Origin: Dimorphilus gyrociliatus
Lineage: Eukaryota; Animalia; Annelida
Reading direction: 5' to 3'
DNA: 64,000 nucleotides
Assembly (NCBI GenBank): GCA_904063045.1
Contig: CAJFCJ010000001.1
Location: forward strand, 2,418,001 to 2,482,000
In this document: positions 36,020 through 53,162 of the stretch, piece after piece
Position numbering within the stretch: the stretch's first letter is position 1
How the letters are laid out: each line of letters begins with the position of its first letter
Translations under genes and position numbers: made by a program
Notes under the pieces: model-generated
Told to the model about the DNA's origin: nothing
The model's input: only the letters and a program-made list of their open reading frames with translations
Databases searched by the model: none

Positions 36020-37746
36020 ATGAAAAAATCCTCCTCTAGAGACACGAAATCTGCAACGTCGGAATTGGCGAATAATACGCAAGATTTAGGTAAGAATTTC
36101 ACGCTTAAAACCTTAAAGAAACACTTCTGTTTCAAGAATAAATCTCTTAAAAAGGCAATAAATTCATTCAAAAGTTGTAAAGAACGCTAGTAAAATACAC
36201 GAGTTTATAAGTCTAAGGTTGAAGTTTCATATATATCTAACGTGGAAGAAAAAGTTATTAAACATATTTTCTATAATAACGCAGTGGTTTATTTACTGAT
36301 GTTGGTCTTACTACGAAGTATATAGTTTTGACTATCATTGTCTTAAAATTGAAAGGATATACGTAAATTAACGTACCAAACAATAAAATATTGTTAGTAA
36401 ATATTGCCCTAAATCCTTAAGTGAACAGCTCTTATGTGAAGGTGTTGTTGTCGTTATCGTTTCTTAATGGTATCTTATACACATATTTATATTGAAATAT
36501 AAGCATTTTACATATTTTTTGTTACAAATTAATAAACGGACGAAACCGTTAAATGAAATCACAAAAATGCGTCAGGTTGAACGGCTTCTTTAATAGCGAA
36601 AAACGCTAGTTTCTTGTTTTTCTTGTCCATTCTTTTCTTCTATTTTTCAATATTTTTATTTTTAATAGAACACAGATTTATTTTGCTCTTTTTTTTTCAG
36701 AATCTAATGATGATAGCAACGGTAATTAAACTACACAAATTATGACTTTTTTAAAAATATCATCCTATTAATGTCACAATCTGTAATTTATAATCAATAC
36801 TATACTTTTTTCATGTAGCTAATAATCAGGTAACATATCGGGTTATCCAATTTAATAATGGTTCGGAAGTGGAGAACCAGTCGCAAATATTAGGTCAAAC
36901 GGGAATTACGCATGTTCTTCCAGCTGGAAGTTTTGCTAATGGTTCATCAAATTCCCCATCAAATGAAGATGCTTCTAATTCAGCCAGGTTTCTTTTCAAA
37001 TATCTTTAGTTTATATATATTTCATTTTCTTTTGGATAATTAGTATTTATATTACTTTATTGTTCAACTATAGATTTACTTACGTTTCCGGAAGTGGTAC
37101 AGATGCGCAAACAATAGAAAGTCTAGGCCAATTACAGACTGCTCAGGGTCCTTATGTTGTTATGATGAGTCATCCAGATGTTATACAGGCTTCTAGAAGT
37201 ATAGCGCCCAGGTAACTTTTATTGAACTGTGATTTGTAAAATTCAGTTTGAAGTATTATTTAAATATTTTAAATAATTGATTAAAACCAAATTGACTTAT
37301 AATTAATGCAAATTTATTCATTTTGATTAATTTCTATGAAAATTAACTATAGATCCGGAAACCGATCGTCGGGTGGCGATATAAAAACTTCCAGGGACGA
37401 AAGAAGACGAGCTACCCATAATGCTGTCGAAAGAAGGAGAAGAGATAAGATCAATAATTGGATCGTTCAACTTTCGAAACTCATTCCTGATTGTGCTGTT
37501 GACGGAATGAAAGGCGGTCAAATGTCAGCTCAGAGTAAAGGAGGAATTCTGGCCAAGGCTTGTGATTACATCAATGAACTACGTACTAAAAATGAAAGAT
37601 TGGTTGAATCTCTACACGAAGTGGAAAGGTTCAACACGAATCGAGACGCATTAAGGGACCAATTCGAGGAATTAAAAACAGAAAATGCTATGCTCAGACA
37701 GAGTTTATCGGAAGCTGGTATTGCTGTACCAGAATCTCACTTCTAA
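36020..37746 (+). CDS. USF: Upstream stimulatory factor (bHLH-zip)
   Basis: Five exons. NQVTYRVIQ, USF-specific region (YVVMMSHPDV..RSIAPR) and RRRATHNAVERRRRDKINNWIVQLSKLIPDC..SKGGILAKACDYI. Confidence 0.95.
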
Positions 37747-38673
37747 CAACTACTTGTACATATTTGACTTTCTAGCTTTTTGCCTATCGAAATTCCGTAA
37801 CATTGAAAAAAAAAGTGAAGGAGCCTTTTTCATTTTTTTCTGTTAAGCTCATTTGTTTCATATAGTGCTTCTCCGTTATTAAAAGTCTGTAGTAAGTAAA
37901 GGATAAAAGAAACGCCTTGATTGGATAATTTGAAAAATTTAATTATAAAATTCTAAAGTTAAGGTAAAGGAAAGCGTAAAAACAACGCTACACTTTTTAA
38001 TTGCTAGACAAAAAAATTTATCATCTACATTTTCATCATTTTATCTGTTAATACATTTTTCATACAATTCAAAAAAAGAGCGCCAAGTTATTTTCGTAAA
38101 TTGATTAATTCACCTTAGTTACCAAATTAACATTTTATATCATAAACATGGCTCAATTCTATCTAATTGGAATTTAGTTTTAAATATAATTTCGTAAAAT
38201 AATAAAAGTTGAAGGCCAATACAAAATAGCAACGATTGGTGTTTTGTATAGTGTGAATTGCTAACGTTATTTCCTCTTTGTCAATGGTTAAGTTTCCATA
38301 ATGTTTGAAGTAAGTGAATATAATATTAAATTGTAGTTTATCTAGAAAGAGCGTTTGAAAAATTTTACTACCTTTTTTTGGATTAATTATATCTAAATCA
38401 TCCTATTATTTGTCTAAAGTAAATATACAAGTCACATAGAGGATGACCAGAATATCTAATCATAAAAAAGGTAGTAATTTGAACAATATTATTAGTTTTA
38501 GGAATATAGTTTTCTATTACATGATTAGTGACATTTCTCAAGCTTTTAAAACAATCACGTGGTCCAAACTTAGCTGAATATTTTTGAATATATTAATAGG
38601 TCATTAAGTTATAAAAATTCGTTACATAAACCATAAGATTTATGTAGGTATGAAATTTTGTTCCTGAATATAG

Positions 38674-41672
38674 AAATACAAAAGCCATGTTCGTGCTATA
38701 AAATCAAACAACAATTCAAGACCGAATTCAAGCACATTGAATGAGGATGTTAGAAGAGAGAATGACTCAACAGACATTGACGTAAGTTGTGCCTCTACTA
38801 ATATTTGTTTGAATCAAAAACGATAACTTTAATTGATTAATCCAATTAGGAAAAAATAAAGCAATTTTGGTCAAAAGTTGATGAGCAATGTTTAAGATAC
38901 GAAAAGGAACAAACAGAGACAAAACCCATCGAGAGAAAGAATGGAGGATTTAGGGTTGTTAGGTTATTCGTTTCGTCAACATTTGTAGACTTCAATTCCG
39001 AAAGAGAGATTCTTGTTAAGAAAACATTTCCCGCATTAAAAGAATGGTGCGAAAAACAAAGAATACGTCTGTTTGAATGCGATTTAAGGTGGGGTGTGCC
39101 GAGGGATTCAACGACTAGAACAACGTTGCTAACATGCTTCGAGGAATTAGATAGATGTCGAGAAGCCCAAAAAAACCAGCCTGTCTTTTTAAATTTGACT
39201 GGAGATAGATATGGTTGGATTCCAGGTATGGATGATATTTCTCAAGATATTCAGGAAAAATACGAATGGCTTTATGGATCATCCATCACCTTTATGGAAG
39301 TACTACATGCCGCTTACAGAAACAAAAATCCCAATGCTGCATTTTTTATAAGAGATAGTTCGTTTTTAAAAGAGTTACCATCAGACCTCAATCATAGATT
39401 TCGACAGGATGATGAATTTAGCAGAAGACAAATTCAGGTAACATTCTAAATCTGAATTTTTAATAAGAATAATAATATTCTGTCCTTTAATTTTCAATTT
39501 TAGTTGTATAAAGAAAACGTTAAAAAACGCTTCCCCGATCAAGTTTTCACGTACAAACCGGAAGTTGAGAGTGTAGATAAAACTTCTAGTCAAGTCAAAT
39601 TGACCAATTTGGAAGAATTTTCCAATCAGGTTCTTACATTTTTTAAAAGTGCGATATCAAAAATATATCCGCTGGAAGAGGTCCAACCGGAAGTTGAAGT
39701 AACCCTTATGGATAAATTGGAAGAGGAACAAAATTTATTTATTGACTATAAAACTGAATTAGTCTTTGGAAGACAAATTGAAATAGATAAACTCAAAGAT
39801 TGTTCAAATGATAATTTTCAAAAAGATTGTTTATCTGAATACGGAGGAAAAAATGATGATAAGTCTTATGAAGGTATAAATTTAATCAACAATAGGGAAA
39901 TAGAAAATTAACAAATACATTGCATCTCATTTCAGAATTGAAAGAAAAATTCAAATCATCAGATGACGATGAACTATTGAAATTAATTCTTGCTGAGCCT
40001 GGTATGGGAAAATCAGCAGTTTTAGCTAAACTAGTCCAAAAAATACAAGAGAATGATGAAAATGATTTGTTTTATCATTTTGTTCCTGTGTCTGCAACTA
40101 CTAGAGAATCTTCTATAATAATAAAAAGAATGTTATCTTTTTTTATAAAAGATGAAAAGGGTAACTTTTAAGATTGTAATCGTTAAATTATCAATTTTAA
40201 TCATCTTATTTTAATAAAAGAATTAAAAATCCTGGAAGAGAAACTCCCAGAAGAGATGATAATTTCATTATTGGCTTATCTTCGAAAGAATCCTGTTAAG
40301 AAAAGAACGTACATACTAATTGATGCTGTAAACGAGGTAATTATTAATTATTGTATGTTATTAGATTTGTACAATTCTTTATTAAAGATGCGCTCATCGG
40401 GATCACATGAACATTTGAATTGGTTACCTCCGACTTTTCCAAAGAATATTCACTGTTTGGTTAGTTGTAATACAGTTCATCAACACACTCTAAGGAAATT
40501 AGCGGCCAAGCAACCTCTTGTTTTTTCGCTTACGCCCTTGGATAAAGAGAGTGTCTTGAATATAATCGACTATTATTTGGGAATGTTCAATAAGAAATTG
40601 GATAGCCATCAGAAACAGTTGTTAAGCGAAAATGACGGAGCGTCAACTCCATTATGGCTGAGACTTGCTTGCGAAGAGCTAAGAATCTATGGGGATTTTA
40701 ATACTCTTTCGAAAAAAATTGAGTTACTTCCAAACGACCTAAAAACGTTAATTGAAGATATCTTAAAAAGACTTCAAACTGAGGCAGCAATTGAAAATCG
40801 CAAAGCACTAAATGGTACGCTATGTCTTTTGTACGCTGCTAGAACTGGACTATCGGAAGATGACATTCCTGTGCTGTTAGGTTCAGAAAATGAGCCAATA
40901 GCCCCACTCGTATGGGCAGAAACAAGGAGACTGTTGAAACAATTTCTTCGTATTATTTACGAAACGAGAACTGGTTACGAAAGAATAGATTTTATCCACG
41001 ATTCAGTAAGATTAGCTGTTAAATCAGTTCTTCTACCGGAGAGCAAAGATACCATTAAATGGCACTATAAATTGGCTAATTTCTTATTAAATGATGCCAA
41101 GAAGGCTCCATTTAGTGTCGACGAAATTCCCTATCACCTGGAGGCCTCGTATCAAAGAGGGAAATTATTAGATTTCATGAGAAAGAATCCATTATCACAA
41201 CGTATACCAACGTACGACAGGGCTCAATATGTCAATGTAAATAAGAATAATAGCCTTACTATAGATATTATAAAATTTTGTTGTTTTTTCTAAACAGAAT
41301 CTCAAATGTACTTCATTCGTTCACTCCAACTTATCTAAAGTTAAAAGTCATTCGGAGATAGAGATGACAGTCTGTCATATCTGCCAAACTGGTATGAAAG
41401 GTGGATTAAACCCGATATTTAATAGACCAACAGAGGCATGTTATATTTGCGGTCAGTGGTTAGGTTCAGGTCATCTGAATAAGAATAAAATATATATGTG
41501 CATGCAGCATAGTAATATGTATAGACATAATTGCGTTCTTTGCAACTCATTCCAAGGTTCTATGAAACAAAAGGATAATAATTTGTATGTTTGTCATCAA
41601 TGTACTTTTGGTTATAAGTATAATCTATGCAATTATTTGGATACTACAAATGAATCGGTTGAAGAATCGTGA
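38674..41672 (+). CDS. DUF4062 + NACHT/STAND NTPase with C-terminal Cys-rich zinc domain (TEP1/NPHP3/NWD-like core); first exon unresolved
   Basis: Exons 38674-38781, 38850-39437, 39504-39873, 39936-40160, 40221-40336, 40388-41236, 41298-41672. RVVRLFVSSTFVDFNSERE..DLRWGV, Walker A AEPGMGKS, Walker B ILIDAVNE, and TPLWLRLACEELR. Confidence 0.85.
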
Positions 41673-42376
41673 AAAATCAATTAAAATAAAATTATTCCAA
41701 TCCTAAACCCAACTAAAATTATATAGTTCAGGTGTTACATACCAAGTATAATATATATTAATAACGAACTATTGTAACAAATCAATGTGCGTGTTAGAAA
41801 TTTCTATGTTCTTAGTTATTGTTTCTATAGGATAAATTTAAAAAAAAAAGACTAATTAGAGTACAAGCTTATTTTTATATTGACACGTGTGAATAATAAT
41901 TATGATGTTTATTATATGTTAAAAATAATTTATGAAATATTTTTGTCATCGTGATAAGCTATTATTGCGCATATCTGTAATCTATAATCTCTATATTATA
42001 TAGTATATATATATGTATATACTAATATATTCTTATCTAACTATTTATTGTATATAACTTTTAAGAAACAACAACAGTAAAACGAAGGCCGGAAGTAAAT
42101 TTTCCCCTGAAGAAACTAGCTCGTTAACTATCTATATGTGACCTAATGAAGTTTTCAAGGAATTAGATTACCTATTCCTCCCTCCTTTTCTCCCTATTTT
42201 TATTTATTTTTTATATGGCTCTTTTCTTGGAATTCTTACGAAAATGTCCCTAAATTGTCTTTATTAACTTTTCGAAATATTTTATTAACTAAATTTAGAA
42301 TTAACTTACACAAGTTTTTTTTCTATAATTCGAATGTAAATCGAAAATCGGAACGTTATCCTATGAAATTTATAAA

Positions 42377-42549: not shown

Positions 42550-53162
<10,613 letters not shown>

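Follow-up and report, generated by a model that had tools for sequence, protein, structure and literature searches.

A predicted NPHP3-like STAND gene of the annelid Dimorphilus gyrociliatus ends in a short Cys-rich exon, probably a zinc module, where its paralogs carry repeats

What can take the place of the repeat array at the C-terminal end of a STAND protein? This question is raised by an eight-exon gene on the + strand of a 64,000-nucleotide stretch of the Dimorphilus gyrociliatus genome (GenBank assembly GCA_904063045.1, contig CAJFCJ010000001.1, positions 2,418,001 to 2,482,000; hereafter the window, in which positions are counted from its first letter). An earlier reading made from the letters of the window (hereafter the sequence-only reading) had proposed that the gene encodes a DUF4062 domain, an NTPase and a helical region, followed in the last exon by a triple-zinc knot of the PHF5A/Rds3 kind, co-opted as a sensor. 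Our analysis keeps the first parts of this proposal and changes the last. We hold, with a probability of about 0.6, that the gene encodes a STAND NTPase of the NPHP3-like kind, from which both the TPR array and the N-terminal lipidation motif have been lost, and to which a small zinc module has been added as a C-terminal regulatory or partner-binding part, with oligomerisation of the NACHT domain joining the TIR-like domains. On the comparisons given below, the gene belongs to the DUF4062-NACHT STAND group (NPHP3, NWD1/2, TEP1), is expressed and single-copy, and stands closest to two NPHP3-like paralogs in its own genome.

The gene model was read from the sequence and was then reproduced exactly by one 3003-nt contig of a public run from 2017 (X1). 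On the window this contig shows zero mismatches, covers all eight exons, ends at 41953 on its 3' side and skips seven GT..AG introns (38309|38674, 38781|38850, 39437|39504, 39873|39936, 40160|40221, 40336|40388 and 41236|41298). Because it crosses the last of these joints, a single RNA joins the Cys-rich last exon to the NACHT exons, as the sequence-only reading requires: separate splicing of this exon had been named there as a refuting result. The short introns of this gene (51-68 nt) agree with the median intron of 66 bp in the published 73.8-Mb genome of this species (bioRxiv 10.1101/2020.05.07.078311). The start codon (38301-38303) belongs to a short exon 1 that precedes the point at which the sequence-only reading began the gene, and the stop codon is at 41670-41672, giving a coding sequence of ~879 codons as the sum of the exon lengths; all domain and homology searches were done exon by exon. 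The window is AT-rich (~30% GC), and searches of the animal's own genome covered a 77.9-Mb assembly of 349 contigs.

Exon 3 (38850..39437) matches DUF4062 (PF13271) with 33.3 bits against a Pfam cut-off of 24.7 (E 5.5e-8), and it also matches the crystal structure of the TIR-like domain of TEP1 (PDB 11gz_A) with E 2.4e-22 over 163 residues. DUF4062 has been described as a TIR-like NAD hydrolase (NADase) fold that adjoins NACHT in human NWD1, NWD2, NPHP3 and TEP1 (bioRxiv 10.64898/2026.05.01.722283). When the numbering of the TEP1 chain was set by matching the published R908, R954 and R976 to the PDB chain, the Glu aligned to the catalytic E1008 was found to be kept (motif SITFMEV), and the equivalent of R976 is kept also. 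The same Glu is present in an ortholog from a second species, described below, and in both of the closest paralogs. The domain is a putative NADase. Exon 4 (39504..39873), which ends in phase 1 and matches no Pfam family, forms the linker between DUF4062 and NACHT.

The NACHT switch is spread over the next three exons. Exon 5 (39936..40160) starts the domain and carries the Walker A motif PGMGKS, exon 6 (40221..40336, followed by the joint 40336|40388) carries the Walker B motif YILIDAVNE with its following acidic residue, and exon 7 (40388..41236) holds what we read as the remaining NACHT, the winged helix and the helical arm. Taken alone, exon 5 stays below the Pfam cut-offs both for NPHP3_N (21.6 bits, cut-off 24.8; E 2.7e-4) and for NACHT (19.2 bits, cut-off 26.7; E 1.2e-3), as a result of its division among three exons that were searched one by one. 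A single exon holds the whole region in the paralog on contig 29 (C29), and this paralog passes the cut-offs of NACHT, NPHP3_N and nSTAND1, comes close on HTH_NWD1, and is collinear with exon 5 (E 2e-5) and exon 7 (E 3e-25). Exon 7 shares 30% identity with the NACHT/HTH_NWD1 exon of C29; for the NACHT/helical exon as compared with the NPHP3-like paralogs the figure is 32-35%. We assign NACHT to the window gene because this closest paralog passes the cut-offs and is collinear with it. The sequence of DUF4062, NTPase and helical region in the sequence-only reading is therefore borne out by the Pfam match, the Walker motifs and the collinearity with C29, and so is its three-part layout, with an N-terminal DUF4062, NACHT plus helical region, and a distinct C-terminal module on one spliced mRNA.

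We also noted that the intron just 3' of Walker B (40337-40387) has a length of 51 nt, keeps the frame and contains no stop codon, so that its retention would add 17 residues to the NACHT domain. It is removed in X1, the one transcript contig seen.

How unusual is the C-terminal end among the relatives of this gene? The DUF4062 exon matched 16 other loci of the genome and the NACHT/helical exon six, and the two closest paralogs, on contigs 29 (C29) and 19 (C19), are NPHP3-like and share 48% identity with the window gene in DUF4062. All five paralogs whose tail was identified end in repeats (TPR at C29 and C19, WD40 at loci C4, C26 and C11), whereas no exon of the window gene has a Pfam match to TPR or WD40; the earlier statement that relatives end in such repeats, and that both kinds are absent here, is thus true within this genome. 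A CxxC-rich open stretch was found at none of the 15 other DUF4062 loci scanned in the genome. The tail of exon 7 aligns to C19 immediately before its TPR region (E 9e-6), placing the end of the exon about where the paralog TPR region starts; beyond the aligned point the window gene has 19 further residues and then the Cys-rich exon. As judged from these alignments, the usual C-terminal TPR or WD40 array is replaced here by one short exon.

The two closest paralogs (L026, G000:C29:139000-147000; L027, G000:C19:2260500-2268500) have the order DUF4062-NACHT-TPR, and both begin with MGC, which is likely an N-myristoylation/palmitoylation site; NPHP3 carries an N-terminal lipidation site of this kind. 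The window gene begins with MFE and has no MGC.

The coding part of exon 8 (41298..41672) consists of 124 codons (41298-41669) and the stop codon, and its translation is rich in Cys (8.9%). A regular expression match confirmed the ligand pattern of the sequence-only reading exactly, one single, five pairs and one single: residues 4-111 read C-x21-CxxC-x18-CxxC-x16-CxxH-x7-CxxC-x16-CxxC-x8-C. The 12 candidate ligands are residues C4, C26, C29, C48, C51, C68, H71, C79, C82, C99, C102 and C111, that is, eleven Cys and one His. Across six frames of the 64-kb window this is the only open stretch with >=3 C..[C/H] pairs within 110 residues. Five pairs were reached in 0.7% of 200,000 shuffles of the exon's own residues, showing that the pairing is non-random even given its composition. 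An internal repeat test gave a 16-residue similarity between the first and the last CxxC knuckle (E 0.003, one pair), which is too little to claim a tandem duplication within the module.

Is such a tail maintained? In Logan assemblies of three other runs we found a syntenic ortholog (L002) with the same exon series, flanked by a basic helix-loop-helix (bHLH) gene upstream and a kinesin-light-chain-like TPR gene downstream. The orthologs share 58% identity in the last exon and 71% in exon 7 (ortholog P0002). All 12 candidate ligands are kept, together with H9 and H100, the CMQH of the window gene being CHQH in the ortholog, and there is almost no change in the C-terminal 24 residues, where the last three Cys lie, while the spacers between ligands vary by 1-5 residues through indels. 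The proportion of nonsynonymous differences (pN) in the last exon is 0.26 against a proportion of synonymous differences (pS) of 0.77; since the latter is saturated, the exon is under purifying selection and the conservation of the ligands is informative, although the conservation rests on a single pairwise comparison because only two species carry the module.

These figures bear on the idea that the gene is a truncated NPHP3-like duplicate whose Cys-rich tail is recent and largely unstructured or without function. The module is indeed an orphan seen in two species only, the tail evolves faster than exon 7, and AlphaFold2, run on the two-sequence alignment, returned very low confidence, with a mean predicted local distance difference test score (pLDDT) of 31.1 for the whole exon and 33.1 for the core (residues 22-113), so that the models were unusable. 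We nevertheless consider this idea quite unlikely: the 12 ligands, H9 and H100 are kept, pN is one third of the saturated pS, the last 24 residues hardly change, the transcript contains the spliced exon, and the gene order around the gene is conserved.

Beyond this ortholog the searches gave no relative of the module. An exhaustive phmmer search with the zinc exon over 1.84 billion representative proteins returned only one 50-residue fragment of that same ortholog, and one word search with the 75 C-terminal residues and another with exon 7 gave nothing else, within a length window that left out full-length annotated relatives. Scanning metagenome contigs gave 419 pattern matches, 0 of them confirmed. 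In its own genome the module is single copy. We found no paper describing this architecture or joining PHF5A with NACHT. By its sequence, then, the module is an orphan, restricted as far as visible to two related species.

The ligand order is nevertheless that of a known fold, and here the central proposal of the sequence-only reading has to be weighed, namely that a trefoil ("triquetra") knot with three zinc ions, of the PHF5A/Rds3 type, has been co-opted here as the sensor; in it the two end Cys and the middle pair would share one zinc while pairs 1 and 4 and pairs 2 and 5 would hold the others. In Rds3p, twelve Cys hold three zinc ions, four Cys each, in a left-handed trefoil of three treble clefs (PMC5091781, PMC4506424). 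The module resembles it in having 12 candidate ligands arranged as a single, five pairs and a single, an order that is real and conserved, and in one short local match. The genome carries its own normal PHF5A on contig 7, and BLASTP of the module against that exon gave one 28-residue alignment with 25% identity (E 0.024, single pair; CV[IL]C ... C[DH][EQ]C). The motif pairs that had been cited as local similarity therefore exist, but they amount to this one alignment, and the same stretch of the module aligns about equally to a second PHF5A unit, CVIC...CKEC (E 0.035). Since one stretch fits two PHF5A sites, the similarity is of the generic CxxC...CxxC sort. Searches with profiles gave no further link. 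Neither the module nor its ortholog matched the Pfam PHF5 hidden Markov model (PF03660, gathering score 26.7 bits) at E up to 10. When all six frames of the genome were scanned with PF03660 (E up to 1), the true PHF5A of contig 7 was the sole match (90 and 26 bits), no part of the window being matched, and hhalign of the module against PHF5A gave a probability of 4.6% over 25 columns. The gaps between successive pairs are 18, 16, 7 and 16 residues in the module versus 3, 12, 8 and 10 in PHF5A, and they shift further by the indels between the orthologs; the long spacers of the module (16-21 residues) are two to six times those of PHF5A (3-12). One ligand is His, whereas all twelve are Cys in Rds3p (PMC5091781). 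The setting differs as well, the module ending a ~879-residue STAND protein and PHF5A being a free protein of 110 residues. The AlphaFold2 models are too poor to judge the topology, which leaves the knot some room, but on the whole we regard it as very unlikely. By these comparisons the module is without detectable sequence relationship to PHF5A; the link would have been the surprising part of the story, and it is not supported.

Part of the module can also be read as a cross-brace. The RING consensus is C-x2-C-x(9-39)-C-x(1-3)-H-x(2-3)-C-x2-C-x(4-48)-C-x2-C, and residues 48-102 of the module, C-x2-C-x16-C-x2-H-x7-C-x2-C-x16-C-x2-C, show the C3HC4 order with both x16 loops within the consensus ranges. 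If this segment were a cross-brace of the RING/PHD/FYVE type, the tail would not be a sensor but a further effector, for instance a docking domain or a ubiquitin ligase. The weak Pfam matches at residues 77-106 are all to cross-brace families (zf-HC5HC2H_2, 0.027; Prok-RING_2, 0.69; zf-UDP, 3.4; FYVE_CARP1-2). On the other hand, the spacer between the fourth and the fifth ligand is 7 residues, against 2-3 in RING and 4-5 in PHD, no family reaches its cut-off, neither AlphaFold2 model is usable, and four more conserved ligands (residues C4, C26, C29 and C111) lie outside the segment and are left unexplained, so that we think this reading unlikely. Similar differences separate the module from LIM, which consists of two fingers with 16-23-residue loops and a 2-residue linker. 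The two 16-residue loops of the module recall it, but here the linker has 7 residues, ligands three and four read C..H and not H..C, and the module had no match to LIM (PF00412) at E up to 10, the one other LIM-like signal being weak language-model neighbours at 0.84; the four additional ligands set it apart from LIM as from RING.

Other searches gave leads of the same general kind. In a Pfam scan of the module and its ortholog no family reached its cut-off. The sub-threshold Pfam matches and the neighbours by a protein language model, taken together, were of PHD-like, Prok-RING, FYVE, LIM and double zinc ribbon types, with PHF5 not among them. A search of the sequences of solved structures gave zero matches at E up to 10, and the language-model neighbours, of which the nearest carry LIM or Prok-RING, scored 0.84-0.86, below the meaningful level. 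We take the module to be, most likely, a series of ordinary fingers of the CxxC...CxxC kind, zinc ribbons or treble clefs resembling LIM or RING, which originated or diverged in this annelid lineage, and with its 12 candidate ligands it most likely binds about three zinc ions. A bolder version would have it as a new three-zinc fold limited to dinophilid annelids, whose role, in an animal STAND protein with a TIR-like (DUF4062) NADase output, is to sense a ligand or to autoinhibit. This we find doubtful; if true, the protein would be an animal counterpart of the TIR-STAND immune switches of bacteria and plants, and a zinc finger would do the sensing in place of repeats.

How might a protein of this make-up work? 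In the NPHP3-like reading that we favour, the tail would hold a protein or a nucleic acid as its partner or ligand, or would keep the protein closed; its release would let the NACHT domain oligomerise, and oligomerisation would bring the N-terminal TIR-like domains together. TIR-type NADases become active when TIR domains are brought together. These steps are drawn by analogy with other STAND proteins, and a sensor or regulatory role of the module is suggested by its position and by what is known of STAND and TIR proteins.

Several points weigh against this picture. NPHP3 is a ciliary scaffold and not an immune receptor, and because the nearest paralogs are NPHP3-like, "sensor" may be the wrong word; for the same reason an immune role is not implied. 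The module was seen in two species only among all the searches, and AlphaFold2 gave no usable model of it. The equivalent of TEP1 R908 (in the exon 3 motif SSTFVDF) is Val in both the window gene and its ortholog, and the two closest paralogs have Lys or Arg there; mutation of R908 lowers the NADase activity of TEP1, and among the four purified human proteins only TEP1 was active, NPHP3, NWD1 and NWD2 being inactive (10.64898/2026.05.01.722283).

The remaining features of the locus can be given briefly. Exon 1 (38219..38309; 91 nt of the X1 contig) holds the 5' untranslated region, the ATG at 38301-38303 and two further codons. This transcribed exon also contains a five-codon upstream open reading frame (ATG at 38284, TAA at 38299-38301), which shares one base with the main start (TAATG), so that termination could be coupled to re-initiation. 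Exon 2 (38674..38781), between the joints 38309|38674 and 38781|38850, adds 36 codons with no recognised domain. On the other side, the 3' untranslated region (41673..41953) follows from the X1 contig, which extends to 41953, 281 nt past the stop codon.

Directly upstream of the window gene and on the same strand lies the last exon of a USF-like bHLH-leucine-zipper gene (37336-37746, motif ERRRRDKINNWI). A bHLH gene stands at the corresponding place of L002 (5560-5922, Pfam HLH), which shows that the gene order is conserved. Downstream, each of the two species has a kinesin-light-chain-like TPR gene (L002 14556-15493; about 44000-50000 in the window).

DUF4062-NACHT proteins have been linked only recently to TIR-like NAD+ hydrolysis, and their control is largely unknown. 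A natural swap of ~300-600 residues of TPR or WD40 for a module of 124 residues offers a compact and tractable system for the function of the C-terminal part, and it is one more case of an animal STAND protein in which the domain at the sensor position has been exchanged. As the module is an orphan, its value depends on proof that it folds and binds something.

Among known systems, the window gene stands nearest to NPHP3 and to the C29 and C19 paralogs, sharing with them DUF4062, then NACHT, then the NWD1-type winged helix and helical arm. The paralogs, however, start with MGC and end in ~300 residues of TPR, whereas the window gene starts with MFE and ends in the 124-residue Cys-rich exon. 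TEP1, NWD1 and NWD2 resemble it in that DUF4062 adjoins NACHT, and the equivalents of the catalytic Glu and R976 of TEP1 are kept; they differ in their WD40 propellers, which the window gene lacks, and in R908, where the window gene has Val. Plant NLRs with integrated zinc-finger (BED) domains also exist. They belong to the NB-ARC clade, use another zinc finger and come from another kingdom, so that the likeness is one of analogy only, but in both cases a STAND NTPase would have a small zinc-binding domain replacing a repeat sensor or standing beside it.

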